In this document: piece by piece, positions 3,875 through 60,958 of the stretch
Layout of the letters: each line of letters starts with the position of its first letter
Numbering within the stretch: position 1 is the first letter of the stretch
Origin: Hyaloraphidium curvatum SAG 235-1
Lineage: Eukaryota; Fungi; Monoblepharomycota
Assembly (NCBI GenBank): GCA_025558095.1
Contig: JAIVFI010000031.1
Span: 1 to 64,000 of the forward strand
Direction of reading: 5' to 3'
DNA: 64,000 nucleotides
Notes under the pieces: model-generated
Databases searched by the model: none
Seen by the model: the letters and a program-made list of their open reading frames with translations, nothing else
What the model was told of the DNA's origin: nothing
Program-made: the position numbers and the translations under genes

Positions 3875-4470
3875 ATGAAGATTACGGCGCTCTATGTGCT
3901 CCTGGGCGTGGCCGCGGTGGCGGCGCTGCCCCCCGCAAGGTGCGGCCCTGTCGACGCTTCCGCGGCACCGCCCTGATCGTGCATTGTCCCGCGCAGCGCC
4001 GCGCCCTCGGACGCCCACGCGGTGTTCCGCCGCAGCTGCGACCTCTGCGCCCCCGAGGACTACTGGTGGGCCGATCGCCCCCGGGCGGTGGCGACCCTGA
4101 CCGCCGCCCATTCCCGCCCAGCGAGTTCGCGTACCCCGGCGCGCCCGCCGGCTCCGTCGCCTGCGTCAAGTACCGCTCGTCCGTGCACCTCTACCGCCGC
4201 TACGGCGACCCGTTCACGCAGTGCGGCACCGGCAGCGACTGCTGCGGGGCCTTCCTGTCGAGCATGCCGACCCCGCCGGCGTCCCTCCAGGAGTGCACCG
4301 ACGCGTGCAACGCCTACCCCGGCTGCGCGTACGTCACCTACGGCGACACAGCGGTCCCAAAGACGTGCGCCATGTGGTCCAGCTGCAACGAGTTCGAGGA
4401 GGCGTCGGGGATGTTTCCGGTGTACGCGCGGGGGCAGAACGCATGCCCGACGACAGCCACCGGCTGCTGA
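3875..4470 (+). CDS. Small secreted Cys-rich PAN/apple-like protein, copy 1 (2 introns)
   Basis: Signal peptide MKITALYVLLGVAAVAA; propeptide ending FRR; SLQECTDACNAYPGCAYVTY...CAMWSSC fits the PAN/apple CxxxC...C..(F/Y)...C pattern. Confidence 0.8.
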
Positions 4471-4559
4471 TGCCGAACGAGACTCGGGCTGGATGGCGGC
4501 TCGACGAACGTCCTTGGATGCATGTACCTTCCGCCGAATGAGCACTGTCGGATGCGTCG

Positions 4560-4682
4560 CTGCCCCGAATCCACGGCGGTGCCGGTGGCACGGTCGGCCA
4601 ATTTCCGCTCGCCTGCCTCATTGTGTCCTTCATTTCCCTCTGTCCCGTACGGAAAGGCTGCGTCCGAAGGAGGCTCCTTACC
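4560..4682 (+). repeat. Diverged, 3'-truncated copy A of a ~200-nt dispersed non-coding element
   Basis: GGCGGTGCCGGTGGCACGGTCG...GGCTGCGTCCGAAGG...TTACC is shared with 7289-7520 and 9970-10205. Confidence 0.65.
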
Positions 4683-4991
4683 GATCCCATTCAGCGCATG
4701 CCTTTGAACCCGCTGGGTTCCCCAATTTCATTGACCCGGTCTTTTGCCCCGGGATGCGGATGGATATCCGTGTAGCACTGGTTGAATGCATCCAAAAGCC
4801 GACGATGGGCGTGACGTGACAAGCGAAACCGCCGTCGAAGGGGTGCCCATGAACTCGAGGGTGCCCTTTTCGAGGGATGGGCGGCTGGGGACGGGGCGGC
4901 TCGTCAAGGCAGACTCCGCCGTCAGGGCACGACAAGGACACACCCATTCGCGCCTCTCCTGCGTCCGTCGCAACCATTTGCACTCGTCGAC

Positions 4992-5341
4992 ATGACGATC
5001 ACCGCGTATTGCATGTTCCTGGCCGGCATCGTGGCCGCCGTGCTCGATCGCCTGCGTGACGTACCGCTCCGCAGTCCACCTCTACCGCCGCTACAGCGAC
5101 TACACGGCGTGCGCCGGAGGCAACGACTGCGCTTGCGGAACCTACCTGGCGGTCGCCGGCACGCCCTCGAGCCCGGCCGACTGTGCGGCCTCGTGCAAGA
5201 ACAATGCCAACTCCAATTACTTCGCCTACAACGCGGATGCTGATCCCAAAGAGTGCGTGCTGTATGGGAGCGGCGTGGGGGGTGCTGAGGGCGCTGGGCG
5301 TACGGGTGGTGCGCGAGTCGTACTGCCCGCTTTGAGCGCCC
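4992..5341 (+). pseudogene. Chimeric relic: internally deleted PAN/apple gene (copy 2) fused to the last ~70 bp of the 7-TM gene
   Basis: Signal peptide MTITAYCMFLAGIVAAVL is out of frame with ACVTYRSAVHLYRRY...CAASC...ECVLYGS; 5270-5341 is near-identical to 7082-7153. Confidence 0.8.
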
Positions 5342-5640
5342 TGCATTCTGTTCGTCGATACCGGCCTCGTCAGGCCCGACAATGGCACTCCGCCCCGGCG
5401 ATACGTCCAGGCAGGTCTTGGTTTGGGGATTCGTCCACCGGCCCGCCTTTTCAGACTGTGGAGGCGCCCATTGCCGCCCCGCCAAAGAAGGCTGCTGCAC
5501 GAAAGGAGCCACGTGAAATGAGATCTGACCTAGTATGTGGCGACGATGCGCTGCGGATCCTTGCAGCCGACTCGGGGCACGGTTGGGGCCCGGCCACTGC
5601 AGATACAACCCTCCGCCACGTCCACCGGAACGCGCACCGA

Positions 5641-7156
5641 ATGACCCCGGAGGAGCTCCTCGCCGTTCTCCCGCGCATTTCCGCGCTCACCCCGTCGCTG
5701 CCCGGCCTCCCCGCCGAGTCGGACGCGGAAACCGTCGCCGCCGTTGCGCTCGCGGGGGAAACCCCGCGGTCTCCCCGCGACCTCGCGCGCGCCGCCGCCC
5801 GCGCCTCTCCCCTGCTCGGCTTCCTCGCCGCGATCTTCCTTCCCCTCGCGGCCCCGGGGAGGCGATGGCTGTACCTCTCGGCGCTGTGGGGCGCCGTTCC
5901 CGGTGTGCTGCTGGCAGTCTCCCTGTACCCCTTCATCGCGTCCGCCGCGGGCGCCGACGACCCCGCCGCCGCCTTCGGCACCTTGCGTATTGCAGTAGGC
6001 GCGGCTGGCATCGCCTGGTTCGACCTGGCGTCGTGCGCCACGGTCTCCCTCCTCGATTACGACGGCGCCACCCGTCCGCAGAACCACATGCTGACCGTGC
6101 TCAGCAGGTGGCTCGATGTCGCCGGCGGCGGACCCCGCTCGGAGCCCCTGGCGAAGGCCGAGGATGGCTCCGCCGGAAGTGACGGCCTTGCGGATCACAT
6201 GGACGGAGACCCGGACTGTCCATGCGCGCGCGAGACCTGCTCCGGACGCGTAGGAACGCACGCTGCCCTCTTCTTCCTTGCCGACTTTTGCGTCCGGCTC
6301 CCGCTCATCGTTCTTTACTGCGCCATACTGCCGATGTGGACCCCGGCCTTCTCCGCGGGCGGGGTCCTCTGGAGGACCTGGTGGGGCTGCCTCGTAGGCG
6401 CCTCGTCGATCGCCACCACCTTCCTCAGCGCCCTCACAGCCCTCGCCCTCGCCTTCATTGCACCCCGGCCGCCGGTCACCCGTCTCTCGGCGCGGCTGCA
6501 GCGCCGCGCCGTCTCGCTCCGCCTCGCCGCACTCGTGCGCCGGTACCGCGCTCTCCTCCTCTTGCCTAGCGACGGCACCGATCCCACGGAACGGCCCGTC
6601 CCGTACGAGCCGTACGAACCCCTTCTGCGGCACCTCTCGACCTCCTGGTCGGGCATCCGAAGCGGGAGCGCCAAGACAGTGCAACGCGTCGCCCTCGTCG
6701 GCCTCCTTCTCGTCCCCCCCGCCATCGCCAACCTCGCCCTCTCGTGCATACCCGCGTGGGAAATCGCGGCGTTCCTGTGGTGGGCCTTCTTTGTCCTGCA
6801 GTCCCTCCCTCCTGGACTACGCCGCGGCCAACGCCCGAATCGCCACGGCCGAGGCCGCGGTGCGCGCGGCGCGGACCGAGATCCTGTCGCTGCTCGCGGA
6901 AGCCCGCGAGTGCGGCGCGTGCGCCGACCCCGCGCGGGCGGATCGCGCGGCCGCCCTGGCGGCGCACGGGGACCGGCTCGCGGCGTTCCTGGGCGCCGCC
7001 GAGCCCGCGCGGCTCTTCGGGTTCGCGGTGGGGTACGGGACCGCCAGGACTCTGTTCGTGACGATGCTGACGCTGGGGTTTGCGGCGTGGGGCGTGCTGA
7101 GGGCGCTGGGCGTACGGGTGGTGCTCGAGTCGTACTGCCCGCTTTGGGCGCCCTAG
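5641..7156 (+). pseudogene. 7-TM receptor/channel-like protein (gustatory receptor-like/7TMIC-like), copy 1, frameshifted at ~6803-6810
   Basis: Seven hydrophobic segments; homologous to 10455-11891 (H..VL.RW, CxCxxxxC, EPY..L...LS..W, SC(I/V)PxW, AAANA.I, H.D.L.AF, R(L/F)xGFxVGY, W.VLR..GV...E..CP). A 4-bp CCCT duplication breaks the frame QSL-LDY. Confidence 0.8.
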
Positions 7157-7288
7157 CGGAGCTTCACCTCTCGGTCGCCTCGCGCCTCCGCACCCTCCTT
7201 GTCGCCGCCCTCGACCCCGCACGTGGAATCGGCCCGCGCCCGGCTGCGGGACCACGTCGCCGCGAAGTCCCATCTGGGTCGCATGGTT

Positions 7289-7520
7289 GCTCCGAAGCCT
7301 TGGCGGTGCCTGTGGCACGGTCGCCTCGTACAGAACGAAATTACCCCTCCCCCGTCTCCATGCGCCCTTCATCCCCTCCCGCGGAGTACAGGGAGGCCGC
7401 GTCCGAAGGGGGCCCGTTACCTGGATCAAGAAGTTCGACTCTTCACCGGGGTCCTCGCACCCCGGCTGAGCCGGGTTCCCGACCCTTGACGCCGTCTTTT
7501 GCTGTAGCCCGCCATTGGCC
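7289..7520 (+). repeat. Copy B of the ~200-nt structured non-coding element (SINE-like or Pol III ncRNA candidate)
   Basis: Colinear with 9970-10205; A-box-like TGGCACGGTCG, B-box GTTCGACTC, hairpin CCGGGGT..ACCCCGG, TTTT at 7497-7500. Confidence 0.8.
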
Positions 7521-7648
7521 CCGATGTGCGGGAAAAGGCGTTGAATTCATGCGTTTTTCGAACCCACGCGAGCCGACTCGTCGTCGTGGAAAGCCGTGCG
7601 ACCGGAGCACCCCCCGCGAGGACAGACAACCCGACACGTCCCAGCCAC

Positions 7649-8330
7649 CATGGAGGTCACGGGGCACCGCGACGAGCACGCGGAGGGTCCCTCGGAGGGG
7701 CCGGACTCCGCCGTCCAGACCAGCCCGCGCGAACCCCCCCCCGCGTTCGAGGACGGGGACGCCGAAGGCGACCGCCCCTACGACGACTCGGACCGCGACA
7801 CCGTACGACATCCTCCGGACCCTCCGCGACCGCATCGCCGGGGCCAACCTCGCCCTGGGCCCGTACATGGGCAGGCGGGAGGACGACCCCGAGGTGGACC
7901 GGGTGATGCTGCACGTCCTGTGCCCCCCCGACCAGGTGCGCCTGCTGCGCGGTATTTGGGAGATCATCGACGGACCGGAGCACGCGGAGTGGTTCGCGAG
8001 GTTGGTGGAGACGGTCGTCGCGGCGCACGCGGATCTGGTGGAGGGGGGGGGCTCGGGAGGCGCGGCATCCCGAGGAAGGACTGGGACCGGTGGAGTGGGT
8101 CCCGATGACTCGATTGCGTGGCACGGGTTGTCTCATGCCTGTTTCGTCGGCCGCAGAGTTCATCATCTACGGATTTTCGGAGCTCGGTTCGGTTCTCGGT
8201 GCCACGTCATCGACGTCGCTCAACCCCCCTTCCGGCAGCCGAGGACGAAGGCTACAGAGGCCGTGCTCCCCCGATCGACTACAGCACCTCCAAGGTGCCC
8301 GAGCTGCCGTCCGTTTTGAGGCGGCAATGA
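7649..8330 (+). pseudogene. Frameshifted member of an unnamed acidic protein family (paralog of 20374-21018)
   Basis: DRDT.YDILRTLRDRIAGAN, LRGIWEII, AHADLVEG..RRGIPRKDWDRWS match the paralog; frame shifts at ~7803 and in the G9 run at 8043-8051; 3' end approximate. Confidence 0.65.
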
Positions 8331-8590
8331 TGTCGGCGAGCAGCTCGTCCGATCATGGGTTTGATCATGGGCCGATCGGAACTGGAGACAAGCGGGTGGG
8401 CCCCGATGGGCCGGGACCGGCCACCCACAGCGGGATGTTTCGAAGCAGTGGAAGCTTTGCCTTGGGTAGTTGAGACTGGAGGATTGCGGAGGATCGGGTC
8501 CTTGTAGGCGCGGAACAAGTTCGGGCGGAACCTCACTAGAGTCGCACCACGTGCCCGCGACATGGTGTCCGACTATCGCGCAGCCCGATC

Positions 8591-9021
8591 TCATCCCGGG
8601 CACACCGTCTCGAGCGTGAACCCCACCCCCGCCCCCCGCAGCACCGACCACAACCCCACCGCCACGGTCAGCACCGTCGCCAGGAACCCGCGGACGACCG
8701 CGTAGCCGACCCTGAACCCGAGGAACCGCCCCTGCTTCTCCTCCGTCCTCGCGAACGCGTCCAGCAGGTCCGCGTGCCGCTGCAGGGCCGAGGCGACGGG
8801 CGCGGGGGGTTCCCCAGCCAGTAGGACGAGGATGCGGGTGCGGTAGGCGAGGTACAGCGAGGCCGCGCGGTCGATCTCGGCGTTGGCGGCGGCGACGGAG
8901 AGCATCTCTTGGGTGAACACCACAAGGACAGTGACCAAGAGAAAGACCATCCAGAGGGCGACGCAGGAGGAGGAGGCGGCGGTGACGGCGGCGCCGGGGA
9001 GCAGCGTTCCCATCAGCGTCG
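8591..9021 (-). pseudogene. 5'-truncated recent duplicate of the 7-TM gene at 10455-11891 (TM5-TM7 only)
   Basis: Highly similar to 10455-10885 in DNA and protein (TLMGTLL...GVGFTLETVCPG*); similarity stops abruptly at ~9021. Confidence 0.85.
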
Positions 9022-9261
9022 CGAAGAGACACTCGTGCGGCTGGTTGGAAGCCTTCCCCAATCGCGTATCGCACGAAAAAGTCTTCGTTCGCTTCGGAGC
9101 TTTTTGGAGACCCCTGTCCTCGTCTGCTGTGCAGTCCACCCAGCGGTGGCACATCCGCGTGCGGCACCTGGCTGGAATCGGCCAGTGTCCTTTCAGGGGG
9201 ACGCACGGAAAGACACCTGTCTGCGCTCCTCCACAGCTCCTCCGGCCGCCTTCCCGCCGGC

Positions 9262-9881
9262 ATGAAGGTAGTCGTTGCGTTTATGCTCCTCGCCGGGGCG
9301 GTAGCCGCCGCGCTCGTCCCCGCTAGGTGCGCCGGTCTTTGTTTGCTCCGCGGGTGCGGCCACTACAGTGATTGACCCGGCCACCGGCAGCGCCGCGCCC
9401 TCCGATGCCCACGCGGTGTTCCGCCGCCACTGTTCGCAGTGCAGCCAGGAGGATTTTTGGTGCGCTGGACCGCTCTCCTCTCCAATCGTGCTGCTTATCT
9501 TCGACACCGCCCGACCCCGGCCGCAGCGAGTTCGCGTACCCCGGCACGCCCGCCGGCTCCGTGGCCTGCGTCACGTACCGCTCGGCCTCGCACCTCTACC
9601 GCCGCTACGCCGGCTCCTTCACGCAGTGCACCGGAGGCAGCGACTGCTGCTCCGGCCTTATAACGAACAAGCCCAACCGGGAGAGCGCCGCCGCCTGTGC
9701 CGCCAGCTGCACGGCCGAGTCAGGATGCAAGTACTTCTCCTTCCTCGAAGACAACGGGAACCCGGCAAACAACCAGTGCGCCCTGTATTCGAGCTGCGAC
9801 AGCTTCAACGCGCCGTCGGGGCCGATTGTGGCGTACGCGATGGACCAGAACGCGTGCCCGACGACCGTCGGGTGCGGATAA
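9262..9881 (+). CDS. Small secreted Cys-rich PAN/apple-like protein, copy 3 (2 introns)
   Basis: Signal peptide MKVVVAFMLLAGAVAA; SAAPSDAHAVFRR, EFAYPG.PAGSVACV.YRS..HLYRRY, SAAACAASCTAESGCKYFSF...CALYSSC...QNACPTT.GC; same intron positions as copy 1. Confidence 0.8.
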
Positions 9882-9969
9882 CGGGGGCCAACCTCCTGCG
9901 TGTGGCAAGTCGTTGGGTGTACATGTACGATTCATGGAATGGGAGCGCTTTTGATTCGGACGCCTCGTC

Positions 9970-10205
9970 GCTCAGAAGCCCGGGCGGTGCCTGTGGCACG
10001 GTCGCCCAGTCCGGAACAAAATTACCCCTCCACTGCCGCCGTGTGCACTTGATCCCCTTTTACGGTGAGCTGGAAGGCCGCGTCCGAAGGGTGCCCGTTA
10101 CCTGGATCAAGAAGTTCGATTCTTCACCGGGTTACGAGAGTAACCCGGCTGAACCGGGCTCCCGACCCTTGACGCCGCCTTTTGCCGACTAGCCCGACTC
10201 TGGCC
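9970..10205 (+). repeat. Copy C of the ~200-nt structured non-coding element (best preserved)
   Basis: 5' GGCGG can pair with 3' CCGCC before TTTT (10180-10183); B-box GTTCGATTC in a GAAG/CTTC stem; perfect 9-bp hairpin CCGGGTTAC-GAGA-GTAACCCGG. Confidence 0.8.
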
Positions 10206-10454
10206 ATTGTTTCCAAGAGGTTGGCGATGCAATCGTTCGCTTTTGGTTCCCTCGGGGGCAAAGTGATTGGGACAGGAGCCGTTGCGTTGCGACAGCAAAC
10301 AACCGAGAATGGAGCCGTCGCAACGAGACCACCATGGCGGGAATGGCTTGCTGATGATGGCGGACCAATGGTGTGGATTATGAGATTTTGCCGGAATTCC
10401 AAACAGAGCTGCTGCGACGTGCGGGATGCTGTCTTTACGCCTTTCCGCGCCGCC

Positions 10455-11891
10455 TCACCCCGGACACACCGTCTCGAGCGTGAACCCCACCCCCGCCCCC
10501 CTCAGCACGGACCACATACCCACCGCGACGGTCAGCACCGTCGCCAGGAACCCGCGGACGACCGCGTAGCCGACCCTGAACCCGAGGAACCGCCCCTGCT
10601 TCTCCTCCGTCCTCGCGAACGCGTCCAGCAGGTCCGCGTGCCGCTGCAGGGCCGAGGCCACGGGCGCGGAGGGTTCCCCGGCGAGGAGGACGAGGATGCG
10701 GGTGCGGTAGGCGAGGTACAGGGAGGCGGCGCGGTCGATCTCGGCGTTGGCGGCGGCAACGGAGAGCATCTCGTAGGTGAACACCGCGAGGAAAGTGACC
10801 AAGAGGAAGGCAATCCAGAGTGGGACGCAGGAGGAGGCGGCGGCCGTGACGGCGCCACTGGCGAGCAGCGTGCCCATCAGCGTCGTGATGCCCGCGCGGC
10901 CCAAGGACAGGTGCTCCAGTTCCGCGGGCCACGCTCTCGACAAAGCAAAGTGCAGGGCGATGTAGGGCTCGTCGGCGGGGCGGGGTGGGGGGGACGACGA
11001 GGTCTCCCTGGCTACGAGACGCGCCAGGACGTCGCCCAGCATGAGGTCCAAGGCGCGGCATCGCAAACGGCCGAGCAGGCGCGACATGGCGATGCTCGGG
11101 GTGTTGTAAATGGTGACAAGGTGGGTCGGCAGGGAGTAAACCAGCAGTTCGTTCACAAGGAAGAGGGCGACGAAGGTCGCGGCCCACGGGGTCGCCCGCA
11201 GCTGCCCGCCGAACGTGAATATCAGCGTCCACGTGAGCGAGAAGTTGGCAAAAAGCTCGGTGACCAGCGGGGGGAGCGGCGCGAGGCCGCGCAGGATCGC
11301 GGCCTGCCCCGGGAGAGAGCCGGAGCACGCATCGTCGGGGCAGGCGCACTGGACGTCCTCGGCGGATACATGGGCCACGAGACGCGATCCCCGGGTGACC
11401 AACCGCCGCCAGCGCACGAGCACGGCGAACGGATGCGCGTCCACGTTCGGCGCGGCCACGAAGCGCGCGGCCACGAAGCGCGCGGCGAGCATGTTCCACA
11501 GGCCTAGCGCGCCAAGCACGAGACATCCGCCGATCCAGAGGCCGGCCGACACCGTGTAGGCCGCCATGTGTTTCGTGCTGAACGTACCGGTCTCGCTGTT
11601 GAAGATCCACATCGCGGCAAACAGCGGGACGTAGGAGCCGGTCGTAGCAATGAGCCGAGCCCCGGTCCAGCGAGCGGCACCGGCAAGTGCGAGGTGCAGG
11701 CGTGTTGCGCCGTGCAGGAACGGGTAATCGGCGAGCCCGTCGAGGAGCGCCTTTCGGTCGAGCGCGTCGCCGCCCGCCTCGGCGTCGCGCCCCTTGGATC
11801 GCCCGCCGGGGCCCGGCATGCCGCCCGGAAAAAGGGCGTCCTCCTCCGCAGCGGACAGCCGCAGGGGGCCGGGCGGGGCGTCGCGGGCCAT
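10455..11891 (-). CDS. Intact, intronless 7-TM receptor/channel-like protein (7TMIC/GRL/DUF3537-like), 478 aa
   Basis: No signal peptide; 7 hydrophobic segments with short 1-2, 3-4 and 5-6 loops and long helical 4-5 and 6-7 loops; ends HADLLDAF...GRFLGFRVGYAVVRGFLATVLTVAVGMWSVLRG. Confidence 0.8.
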   Translation of the reverse strand: MARDAPPGPLRLSAAEEDALFPGGMPGPGGRSKGRDAEAGGDALDRKALLDGLADYPFLHGATRLHLALAGAARWTGARLIATTGSYVPLFAAMWIFNSETGTFSTKHMAAYTVSAGLWIGGCLVLGALGLWNMLAARFVAARFVAAPNVDAHPFAVLVRWRRLVTRGSRLVAHVSAEDVQCACPDDACSGSLPGQAAILRGLAPLPPLVTELFANFSLTWTLIFTFGGQLRATPWAATFVALFLVNELLVYSLPTHLVTIYNTPSIAMSRLLGRLRCRALDLMLGDVLARLVARETSSSPPPRPADEPYIALHFALSRAWPAELEHLSLGRAGITTLMGTLLASGAVTAAASSCVPLWIAFLLVTFLAVFTYEMLSVAAANAEIDRAASLYLAYRTRILVLLAGEPSAPVASALQRHADLLDAFARTEEKQGRFLGFRVGYAVVRGFLATVLTVAVGMWSVLRGAGVGFTLETVCPG

Positions 11892-52467: not shown

Positions 52468-53044
52468 ATGTCCGTCCTCGCGCAGAAGGTCGCCGCCGGG
52501 CTTTGGGGCGTCTGGGGCTTTTTGCACATCTGGGTGCCGTACGATGGCTGGAAAACCTACCACGGCGAGGGCCTGAAGGGGCAGTGGCACGCGATTACGG
52601 GCGGTGCCGACGCGCCGCGTTCGGAGGTGGGTCGCCTCGCCGCGCAGCGCAACCGTGCGGCTGACGCGCTCCGAAGCTGGGCGTGACCGGCACCAACGCC
52701 AACGCGCTCTCGTCGCTGATGCTCAACTTCGTCAACGACGTCGGCGGTTACGGCATCCTCGGCCTCGTCCTCGCTCGCCGGATGTGGATTAAGCCGCGCT
52801 GGGAAGATTAACTCTTGGGCGTCGGGCTCGTCGGCATCGCTGACCTGTTGGTTCCGGCGCTCGTCGATCAGGCCGCGCTGACGAAAGCCTCCTTCACAGA
52901 TCGTTCCTGTTCCTGCTGGTCTGGCCGAACCGCGTCATCGAGATGAGCTTCCCGGTGCTGCTGGGGCCCCTGGTGTGGTTCGCGGCCGTGCTGGTGACGC
53001 CGTTCGCGCTGCCAAAAGCCGGGAGCTCCACCAAGGAGGAGTAG
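52468..53044 (+). pseudogene. Small 4-TM membrane protein (2 introns) with an in-frame TAA at 52809-52811
   Basis: LWGVWGFLHIW...NFVNDVGGYGILGLVLA..W...WED*LLGVGLVGIADL/SFLFLLVWP...GPLVWFAAVLVT; the frame and splice sites are intact around the stop. Confidence 0.65.
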
Positions 53045-53427: not shown

Positions 53428-54709
53428 ATGCCGCCGAGGAAGAAGAAGGTCCCCGCGCCGCTCTCCTCCTACGATATCGTCTCCTCCCGTAAGAATTCGT
53501 GCCGGCTGTTGCTCTTCGCCCCGCGGGCTGACCCGACGTGACTCCCCGGCCTCCGTGTTCAAGAGACAACGAATGGCCGTCAGAAGTTCCCCGTCGAAGT
53601 GCTCCGCATGATCTTCAGCTACGCGCCCGACGCCGCCCTCTTCAACGCCCTGATGACCTGCCGCCTCTGGTTCATCATGGCCGCCCCCGTGCTGTGGCGC
53701 GACGGCCCCTGCTTCCGCAGGCTGGACCAGATGTACTCGTTCCTCTTCTCCAACTACACGGCCGAGGCGTACGCGGCGGGGAAGCGCAAGCCGGCCGACG
53801 GGTCGCGGAGGAAGCCGCTGCGGCTCAAGGACAGGGACGAGAAGGAGTTCAAGCTGCCGTACCTGTCGTTCGTCAGGCGGCTGCTGCCCGACCGGACGCA
53901 GCACCCGCGGGACGCCAACAACGATGAAAAGGCGCGGCTGTACGGGCGGTGCACCGGGCTCGAGCACGTCCACTTTGGCGAGTTCCACTTCAACAGCGAG
54001 GTGCAACTATCTGGCAAAGATCTCTACACTTGAACTGAAGCGCCTTCCCTCGCCCACAGTGCCTCGACCAACTTGCCAAAAAGGCTAACGCCAAGCTCAA
54101 GCACCTCCACCTGGAGTGGCTCATCAAGGACCAGCGCAACGTCGTCTCCTTCCTCGAATCGTTCCCCAAGCTGGAGTCGCTCGAGATCGTCAACTCGGCC
54201 TTCTTCGACGACACCGTCCTCATCGCCCTCTCCTACTCACACGGGACGAAGATGAAGCGGCTCGTCCTCAACCGCACCTGCGTGAGCGCGTTCGGCCTGC
54301 GGGTGGCGCTGCCCCGCTTCGCAGCTCTCGGGGAGCTGGACCTGTCGTACAAGGTGATCCGGTACGGCGAGCAGTCCGTGCCCATCTCCGACCGGGTGCT
54401 TGACACGGTCGCGGAGCACGGAAAGCACTTGAGGGTGCTCCGGATCCGGGAGCACCCGGCGGGGACCATGACCGAAGGAGGGTGGGTTTCTTCCGAATCG
54501 CACCGCCTCGAACCCACCTTTCTGACTCGACAACGACCCCCAGGGTGCTCAAGCTGATCGCGTCGATGCCCAACCTGGAGCTGCTCGACGCCACCGGCAA
54601 TGCCAGCCTGTCGGGGGGCGAGAGGATCGCCGAGGGCGGGGCGTGGGACGCGGCGAGGCTGGAGCTGATGGGGAAGCCGCCCAAGCCGGCGCCCGTCGTG
54701 AGCGAATGA
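53428..54709 (+). CDS. F-box/leucine-rich-repeat (RNI-like) protein, multi-exon
   Basis: FPVEVLRMIFSY...ALMTCRLWFIMAAPVLW; YLSFVRRL; LRR units LKHLHL, FPKLESLEI, LGELDLS, MPNLELLD. Confidence 0.82.

Positions 54710-58216: not shown

Positions 58217-60958
<2,742 letters not shown>

Follow-up and report, generated by a model that had tools for sequence, protein, structure and literature searches.

A short element repeated near the start of a contig of the early-diverging, zoosporic-lineage fungus Hyaloraphidium curvatum raises the question of what kind of gene it is and which part of it is copied into RNA. The contig, called C31 here, belongs to a 32-Mb genome of 55 contigs; the window is the stretch of 64,000 nucleotides at its start, with a GC content of about 67%. 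An earlier note had described the element as an unannotated structured small-RNA gene of the Pol III type, or as a SINE. The first part of this description stands on the paired ends, the T-run and the compensatory changes, while the second has to be given up. The element is best explained as a Y RNA-type small-RNA gene with its own upstream promoter of the Pol III type, a reading to which we assign a probability of about 0.7.

Copies of the element in the window

Three copies had been claimed, and all three are present in the sequence: A at 4547-4745, B at 7277-7520 and C at 9958-10205. Copies B and C align over 244 columns (7277-7520 with 9958-10205) with 82% identity, and the alignment ends sharply at the edges. 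The 5' neighbour of copy B is a 7-TM gene and that of copy C is a PAN-domain gene. Since the likeness is confined to the element, the duplicated unit is the element and not a gene flank; the similarity of B and C is limited to the promoter plus the RNA. Copies A and C, in addition, have paralogous PAN genes 75-80 nt upstream of them, and their similarity continues from the coding region. A block of 22 nt, GGCGGTGCCNGTGGCACGGTCG, is the same in A, B and C except at N and has no further match with fewer than three mismatches in the 32 Mb.

Copy A had been taken for a partial copy that ends at 4682. It is indeed a copy, a diverged one, and it reaches the closing strand and T-run at 4733-4745. Every motif that had been listed is found in the element, including the 3' CCGYC-TTTT; the T-arm-like GAAG-TTCGAYT-CTTC occurs in B and C and is absent from A. 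The compensatory change in the second hairpin, CCGGGGT/ACCCCGG in B against CCGGGTTAC/GTAACCCGG in C, is real. A coding reading of B and C was rejected, as their open frames change frame from copy to copy.

The surroundings of the element are also repetitive. The tail of the 7-TM gene (7082-7154) is repeated with 96% identity at 5270-5342, right after a PAN fragment, and the 3' end of a minus-strand 7-TM gene occurs at 8590-8889 and, with 95% identity, at 10454-10753. Recent rearrangements among PAN, 7-TM and Y-like genes have made a mosaic of the locus. A long open reading frame near the contig start, 629-1549 on the minus strand, is unrelated to the element. By eye it resembles a mitochondrial pyruvate or branched-chain ketoacid dehydrogenase kinase.

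The eight-member family

A count of genomic copies by BLAST, which had been put forward as a check, gave B and C as the only full-length matches. A genome scan with a pattern for the inner part, GCGTCCGAAGG..TTACC, led to three shorter relatives on another contig, C46. Two covariance models, R1 and R2, were then built from the copies and run genome-wide, with matches listed up to E 10. They return exactly eight members, three in the window and five on C46, and nothing else up to that value. The five model matches on C46 are each about 70 nt long: H at 58866-58938 (+), E at 68184-68257 (-), D at 68496-68568 (-), G at 73480-73557 (+) and F at 73768-73840 (+). They cluster within 15 kb, include two tandem pairs about 300 nt apart, and are flanked by unrelated genes. 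None of them has the 22-nt block that had been read as an A box or the hairpin that had been read as a B box.

The predicted RNAs measure about 105 nt in B and C; that of A has about 90 nt, and those of the C46 members have about 70 nt. All have the same layout. A closing stem, the 5' strand of which ends in GUC and the 3' strand of which starts with GAC, is followed by the T-run. Within it come an upper-stem strand of 6-8 nt, a loop opening with GUUAYC, the returning strand, a bulge of 3-6 nt and CUUGAC. The upper stems are of the kind GUCCYCGG/CCGRGGRC, GCCCG/CGGGY and similar. The string GUCCGAAG is common to all eight members, with (G) next in the family layout. GUCCGA is likewise found in all eight, the full GGUCCGA in G only. 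The N6-GUUAYC spacing is complete in five (B-F); A has CUUACC, and in G and H the spacing is one base longer. CUUGAC is kept in six, with AUUGAC in A and CUUAAC in E. Paired ends with a T-run of four or more directly after the closing strand are present in every member.

The predicted RNA of copy C is located at 10074..10183 on the plus strand. Its length is about 104-110 nt, with a 5' end uncertain by about 5 nt, and it scores 78 bits with R1 (E 9e-16 genome-wide). It consists, in order, of the lower stem, GUCCGAAGG, the upper stem, GUUACC, a T-arm-like hairpin (10107-10125), a 9-bp hairpin (10127-10148), CUUGAC, the closing strand and the T-run (10180-10183). Its minimum-energy fold yields the predicted architecture with a z of -4.9. 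Copy B (7393..7500, +) has the same layout in about 102-108 nt and 75.8 bits with R1; its second hairpin is CCGGGGU/ACCCCGG and its T-run lies at 7497-7500. The diverged copy A (4654..4745, +) is about 90 nt long and reaches 61 bits with R1. It contains GUCCGAAGG, CUUACC, AUUGAC, the closing strand and a T-run at 4742-4745, without the T-arm-like hairpin.

When the sequences are folded singly, six of the eight give a lower stem, an internal loop, an upper stem and a loop. Copies A and E do not take the family shape when folded alone. For A this indicates that it may be decaying, and the same may hold for E and perhaps G. In the alignment of the eight sequences 81% of the cells pair, and eight pairs are altered on both sides. 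Covariation was tested on these paralogues by shuffling: the observed score is reached by none of 500 shuffles, and controls with slid partners pair at 33-50%. As the eight sequences are paralogues that fall into about three subgroups, this is moderate evidence and not proof.

Homologues were sought in other genomes, with none found outside H. curvatum in a metagenome pattern scan and in the Ro60 flanks of two relatives, so that all covariation comes from the eight paralogues. The metagenome pattern was GTCCGAAGG-N4-8-GGTTAYC-N15-45-CTTGAC. Its 12 matches are read as chance: three of them, two being identical, are in coding regions without a T-run, and the rest score 13 bits or nothing. The regions flanking Ro60 in the two relatives (Logan assemblies; 22 kb and 6 kb) gave no model match.

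The upstream region

For comparison of their upstream regions the eight members were placed in an ungapped alignment anchored at the G of GUCCGA. An A/T-rich box is located 57-65 nt upstream of GUCCGA in seven of them, in otherwise GC-rich DNA. The box contains CGTAATT in D and H, AAATTAC in B and C, and AAAAT, GATTT or AATTT in the others. Members D and H have the same upstream box, CGCCCGTAATTCCCCC, and their CGTAAT stands 63-65 nt upstream of GUCCGA. A TATA-like box, CTTNAW or TCATGAA, is found about 28-35 nt upstream of GUCCGA, again in seven of the eight; member G is without the promoter spacing. In the U6 gene of the same genome CGTAAT and TATA precede the start by 62 nt and 31 nt, and in the gene of the RNase P RNA CGTAAA precedes it by 61 nt. 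Estimated from base composition, the chance of finding an exact CGTAAW no more than 2 nt away from a set position is about 1e-3 per gene.

In copy C the region read as promoter is 9983..10053 (+). It comprises a palindromic block (9983-10004), the A/T box AAAATTACCCC (10018-10028) and a TATA-like CTTGAT (10048-10053). The positions of the boxes match the upstream region of U6, and the A/T box also matches that of the RNase P RNA gene. The corresponding region of copy B is 7302..7372 (+), with the palindromic block at 7302-7323, the A/T box GAAATTACCCC at 7337-7347 and CTTCAT at 7367-7372. That of copy A is 4575..4633 (+), with the block at 4575-4596, the A/T box CCAATTTCC at 4598-4606 and CTTCAT at 4628-4633. 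Only A, B and C have the palindromic block, GTGCC-NGT-GGCAC, which in A lies 12 nt nearer to the A/T box than in the other two. We infer that it is a putative upstream binding site rather than an A box.

The identity between B and C is unevenly distributed. It amounts to 100% in the palindromic block, 91% in the A/T box, 83% in the TATA-like box and 60-69% in the spacers, and it is 91-94% in the body of the RNA and 70% in the variable hairpin, where pairing is kept. Judged by sequence, this is the pattern of a small-RNA gene with a predicted external, type-3-like promoter, and the 5' half is more likely to be a promoter than a part of the RNA.

A start at the U6 spacing would lie 1-3 nt upstream of GUCCGA. 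The outer pairing of up to 9-12 bp suggests that the start may be up to 9 nt upstream. Taken together, the two leave the 5' end uncertain by about 5 nt. The nearer start would give a shorter lower stem than that of vertebrate Y RNAs.

Some features of the other small-RNA genes should be recorded here. The U6 snRNA is encoded by two identical inverted copies 1.6 kb apart, at 52802-52912 (+) and 54474-54584 (-) of contig C42. After the conserved ...ACACGCA there is an extra GC-rich hairpin and no immediate T-run; the 3' end is unusual, or possibly contains an insertion. The RNase P RNA gene (C2, 409787-410037; 84.7 bits) ends in a T-run. A weak candidate of 20 bits for the RNase MRP RNA (C11, 393222-393689) has CGTAAA upstream, 14 nt off the register. 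The Metazoa_SRP model found no SRP RNA in the genome.

The Y RNA signature

It is important to compare the family with the well characterized Y RNAs of animals. For mammalian Y RNA1 the published primer GGCTGGTCCGAAGGTAGTGAGTTATC, given as the 20-mer GGCTGGTCCGAAGGTAGTGA, has the form GGCTGGTCCGAAGG-TAGTGA-GTTATC, and the fragment of the 3' stem, CTTCTCACTACTGCACTTGACTAGTCT, reads ...CTGCACTTGACTAGTCT (PMC3928194). The match of the family to Y1 consists of three blocks of 9, 6 and 6 nt in the same order, and the 6-nt spacing is the same in five of the eight members. The third block, CUUGAC, is separated by a few bases from the closing strand and U-run that follow it. The signature GTCCGAAG-N7-8-GTTAYC occurs seven times in the 32 Mb, each time in a family member; the reversed control occurs once.

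The strand GGUCCGA is contacted by Xenopus Ro60 (PMC4201824). The Ro60 site is described as a helix of 7 bp in which one C is bulged, with a bulge of 3 nt on the other strand (PMC4726728), and the bulged C9 is the primary determinant for Ro60 (PMC4030889). In the family the register of the Ro60 helix is as in the published Y1 sequences, and the bulge on the 3' side has 3-6 nt. Transcription of Y RNAs stops at a run of 4-6 T (PMC4030889). Y RNAs have a size of about 100 +/- 20 nt, and the sizes predicted for the family are about 70-110 nt. Membership among the Y RNAs is supported by the Ro60 site, the fold and the terminator, with transcription and binding remaining predicted. The upper-stem GUG/CAC motif, which is tied to a role in DNA replication, is absent from the upper stems of the members.

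Searches against models of known RNAs gave no name to the element, in agreement with the earlier note, which had not recognised it as a tRNA, 5S, SRP or snRNA. ARAGORN reported no tRNA or tmRNA in the window. The Rfam Y_RNA model, RF00019, has no match genome-wide at E up to 10. Scans of three stretches of 136-430 nt with the Rfam library gave no Y_RNA, YrlA or tRNA match, and a scan of 4000-11000 gave noise only. With E-values that refer to a search space of 32 Mb or of 4227 families, a match of about 15 bits would go unlisted, and the result is not a clean negative.

The putative Ro60 partner

A TROVE search of the genome found the Ro60 gene as two identical inverted copies on contig C10, at about 630.3-631.4 kb (-) and about 642.2-643.3 kb (+), about 12 kb apart. 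The product has the TROVE and vWA_Ro60 domains and matches the solved human and Xenopus Ro60 structures with E 1e-114 (PDB 9nen) and 1e-111 (1yvp). A 100% match identifies it as the annotated Ro60-like protein of H. curvatum, and there are annotated orthologues in further zoosporic fungi. The TROVE matches in the genome were to Ro60 only, with no TEP1-like protein among them. The Vault repeat (PF01505) was not found in the genome, and the control genomes likewise gave no positive match.

At the Ro60 loci of H. curvatum there is no match to the family models; none of the Y-like genes lies next to Ro60. Only one of the two Ro60 copies is preceded, at a distance of about 145 nt, by GGCTGGTCCGA (L043:5746). 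The site GGCUGGUCCGA was considered as a Y RNA in its own right and rejected. It is without a UUGAC partner, a T-run, promoter boxes or a model match, and its fold is unremarkable (z -1), which makes it probably a chance occurrence; dozens of chance copies of this 11-mer are expected in the genome from base composition. The eight-member family is a better Y RNA candidate than this site beside Ro60.

Transcript contigs at the locus

The expression data are from one public run and consist of assembled contigs, from which RNA ends and levels are not readable. The contigs derive from RNA, as indicated by joints of 52-67 nt with GT..AG ends. These introns belong to the PAN-C gene and to the gene starting at 7651, at 8094-8157, 8185-8238, 9324-9389 and 9458-9526. 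A joint at 7105-7168, across the end of the 7-TM gene, has CT..AC ends and suggests an antisense or non-canonical splice. The contig of the spliced PAN-C mRNA stops at 9945, before copy C, and the depth drops from about 123 to about 5 over 10016-10212, the region of copy C. The contig end and the drop in depth fit a separate non-polyadenylated gene at C, without proving one. Copies A and B are inside longer contigs at the level of mRNA, which indicates read-through by polymerase II there.

Alternative explanations

The element could be a type-2 Pol III RNA or a SINE of about 200 nt that starts at GGCGG, carries internal A and B boxes and pairs its far 5' end with CCGCC, as the earlier note had it. 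The string TGGCACGGTCG is A-box-like, GTTCGAYTC is B-box-like, the 22-nt block is perfectly kept in A, B and C, and a GGCGGTG/CGCCGCC pairing of 7 bp is possible. The boxes, however, do not belong to the family as a whole: the "B box" hairpin is missing from six of the eight members (A and D-H) and the "A box" block from five (D-H), besides being displaced by 12 nt in A, and their reading as internal promoter elements is probably wrong. The 3' strand pairs at 12 of 13 positions with the nearby GGAAGGCCGCGUC and at 7 with the distant GGCGGUG. This preference, together with a 5' half made of conserved boxes, two of them at the distances seen in U6, and poorly conserved spacers, makes an RNA of 200 nt from GGCGG probably wrong as well. 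Within such an RNA the spacers would be only 60-69% conserved, and its full fold has a z of -2.5 for C and 0.1 for B, with the minus strand no better. A SINE is also difficult to reconcile with only eight members in two clusters, each with its own upstream boxes and none with target-site duplications or tails, and with the lack of any tRNA by ARAGORN in the window. We consider this explanation very unlikely.

The read-through contigs of A and B, together with the place of A and C behind paralogous PAN genes and the A-C likeness that runs on from the coding region, would suit an element of the 3' flank or UTR of the duplicated PAN and 7-TM genes, for example a signal for mRNA stability or 3'-end formation present in polymerase II transcripts only. 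Copy B, however, follows an unrelated gene and shares the 244-nt unit alone, the five members on C46 stand beside unrelated genes, and the contig of the PAN-C mRNA stops short of the element. This reading leaves the Y1-type motif, the T-run and the boxes matching U6 (the A/T box also matching that of the RNase P RNA) unexplained, and such an origin appears improbable. It might also be supposed that the family is a lineage-specific stem-loop RNA unrelated to Ro60, for example a vault-like one, in which the likeness to the Ro60 site is convergent or due to chance. The silence of the Rfam Y_RNA model and the fact that Ro60 binding is only predicted are in its favour. Convergence or chance would have to account for a Y1 match of 9 + 6 + 6 nt in the same order, with the 6-nt spacing in five of eight members, for a signature exclusive to family genes in 32 Mb, and for a genome that encodes Ro60; no vault repeat was found, in a search that was without a positive control. 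We regard this as quite unlikely. A Y RNA-type gene with its own upstream promoter is the preferred explanation.

Proposed mechanism and significance

Each copy would combine an upstream promoter region of about 100 nt with a transcript resembling a Y RNA. Transcription would begin a few nucleotides upstream of GUCCGA and terminate in the T-run. The 5' and 3' ends would pair and form a lower stem holding the bulged helix GUCCGA/UUGAC; in vertebrate Y RNAs the bulged helix is the Ro60 site (PMC4726728). The oligo-U tail would bind La, and each paralogue would owe its particular partners to the upper stem and the variable loop. The loop of B and C would contain, in addition, a T-loop hairpin and a further hairpin. 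The family, its conserved sequence and pairing, the Ro60 gene and the boxes matching U6 (the A/T box also matching that of the RNase P RNA) are observed; that Pol III transcribes the genes, where exactly the 5' end lies, that Ro60 binds the RNAs and what function they may have is inferred.

No Y RNA or sbRNA had been identified in fungi or plants as of two reviews (PMC4726728, 2015; PMC7281143, 2020), and no later report of a fungal Y RNA was found in full-text literature searches. Ro60 is annotated in several zoosporic fungi, and the present family is a candidate RNA partner for it in H. curvatum. If the assignment is true, a fungal family with a vertebrate-type Ro60 site would date the pair of Ro60 and Y RNA at least to the common ancestor of animals and fungi, and would provide a microbial eukaryote for studying RNA surveillance by Ro60. 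The signature GUCCGAAGG-N6-GUUAYC ... CUUGAC-N4-7-UUUU could be used to seek Y RNAs in protists and algae that have Ro60. The upstream boxes matching those of U6 give a first sketch of a type-3-like Pol III promoter in this lineage.

Comparison with known systems

With tRNA-derived SINEs and type-2 Pol III genes the element shares the A-box-like and B-box-like strings and the T-run in B and C. It differs from them in that the boxes are not family-wide, the copy number is eight, and there are neither target-site duplications nor a tail. The nematode sbRNAs (CeY) form, like the predicted RNAs of the present family, a small multi-copy group of Pol III stem-loop RNAs in which the ends pair and the stem carries a bulge. 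The sbRNAs are defined by a UUAUC loop motif and an A/GUG-CAC/U upper-stem motif (in part after PMC4726728). Compared by description, the family has only the GUUAYC element in common with them.

The bacterial-type YrlA RNAs (YrlA/Yrn1) have the order Ro60 motif, conserved YUAY, optional V loop, T arm, acceptor-like stem-loop and D arm, and metazoan Y RNAs are said to lack such a tRNA-like module (PMC4201824). The loop of B and C opens with UUACC, followed by a short linker, a seven-base T-loop with a G-C closing pair (of the G53/C61 type) and a hairpin of 7-9 bp. The order UUAC, GAAG-UUCGAYU-CUUC and 7-9-bp hairpin is strikingly like that of YrlA. However, B and C are without a D arm and contain nothing tRNA-like according to ARAGORN and Rfam, and the T-arm-like hairpin is present in two of the eight members, the closely related B and C. 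The family retains the two strands of the Ro helix, as animal Y RNAs do, and its genes do not lie next to Ro60. By analogy, B and C might be eukaryotic Y RNAs with a working tRNA-like module in the YrlA order of YUAY, T arm and acceptor-like hairpin, which we regard as doubtful. If this were true, a tRNA-like character may go back to the ancestral partner of Ro60, and Y RNAs of both the plain and the tRNA-like kind would have persisted in an early-diverging fungus.

The vertebrate Y RNAs (Y1; RF00019) differ from the family in several respects. The host is a fungus. GUCCGA is preceded by C instead of G in six of the eight members, and by U in H. The upper stem of the family is GC-rich and without GUG/CAC, the predicted 5' arm is shorter, the loop of B and C has two extra hairpins, and the Rfam model is blind to the family. 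The family and the vertebrate Y RNAs both have the 5' GUCCGAAGG-N6-GUUAYC and, on the 3' side, CUUGAC with a closing strand of 4-7 nt and UUUU. Both have paired ends, a bulge on the 3' side and an upper stem with a variable loop within 70-110 nt, and in both the genes are clustered and have an upstream promoter of type-3-like layout.
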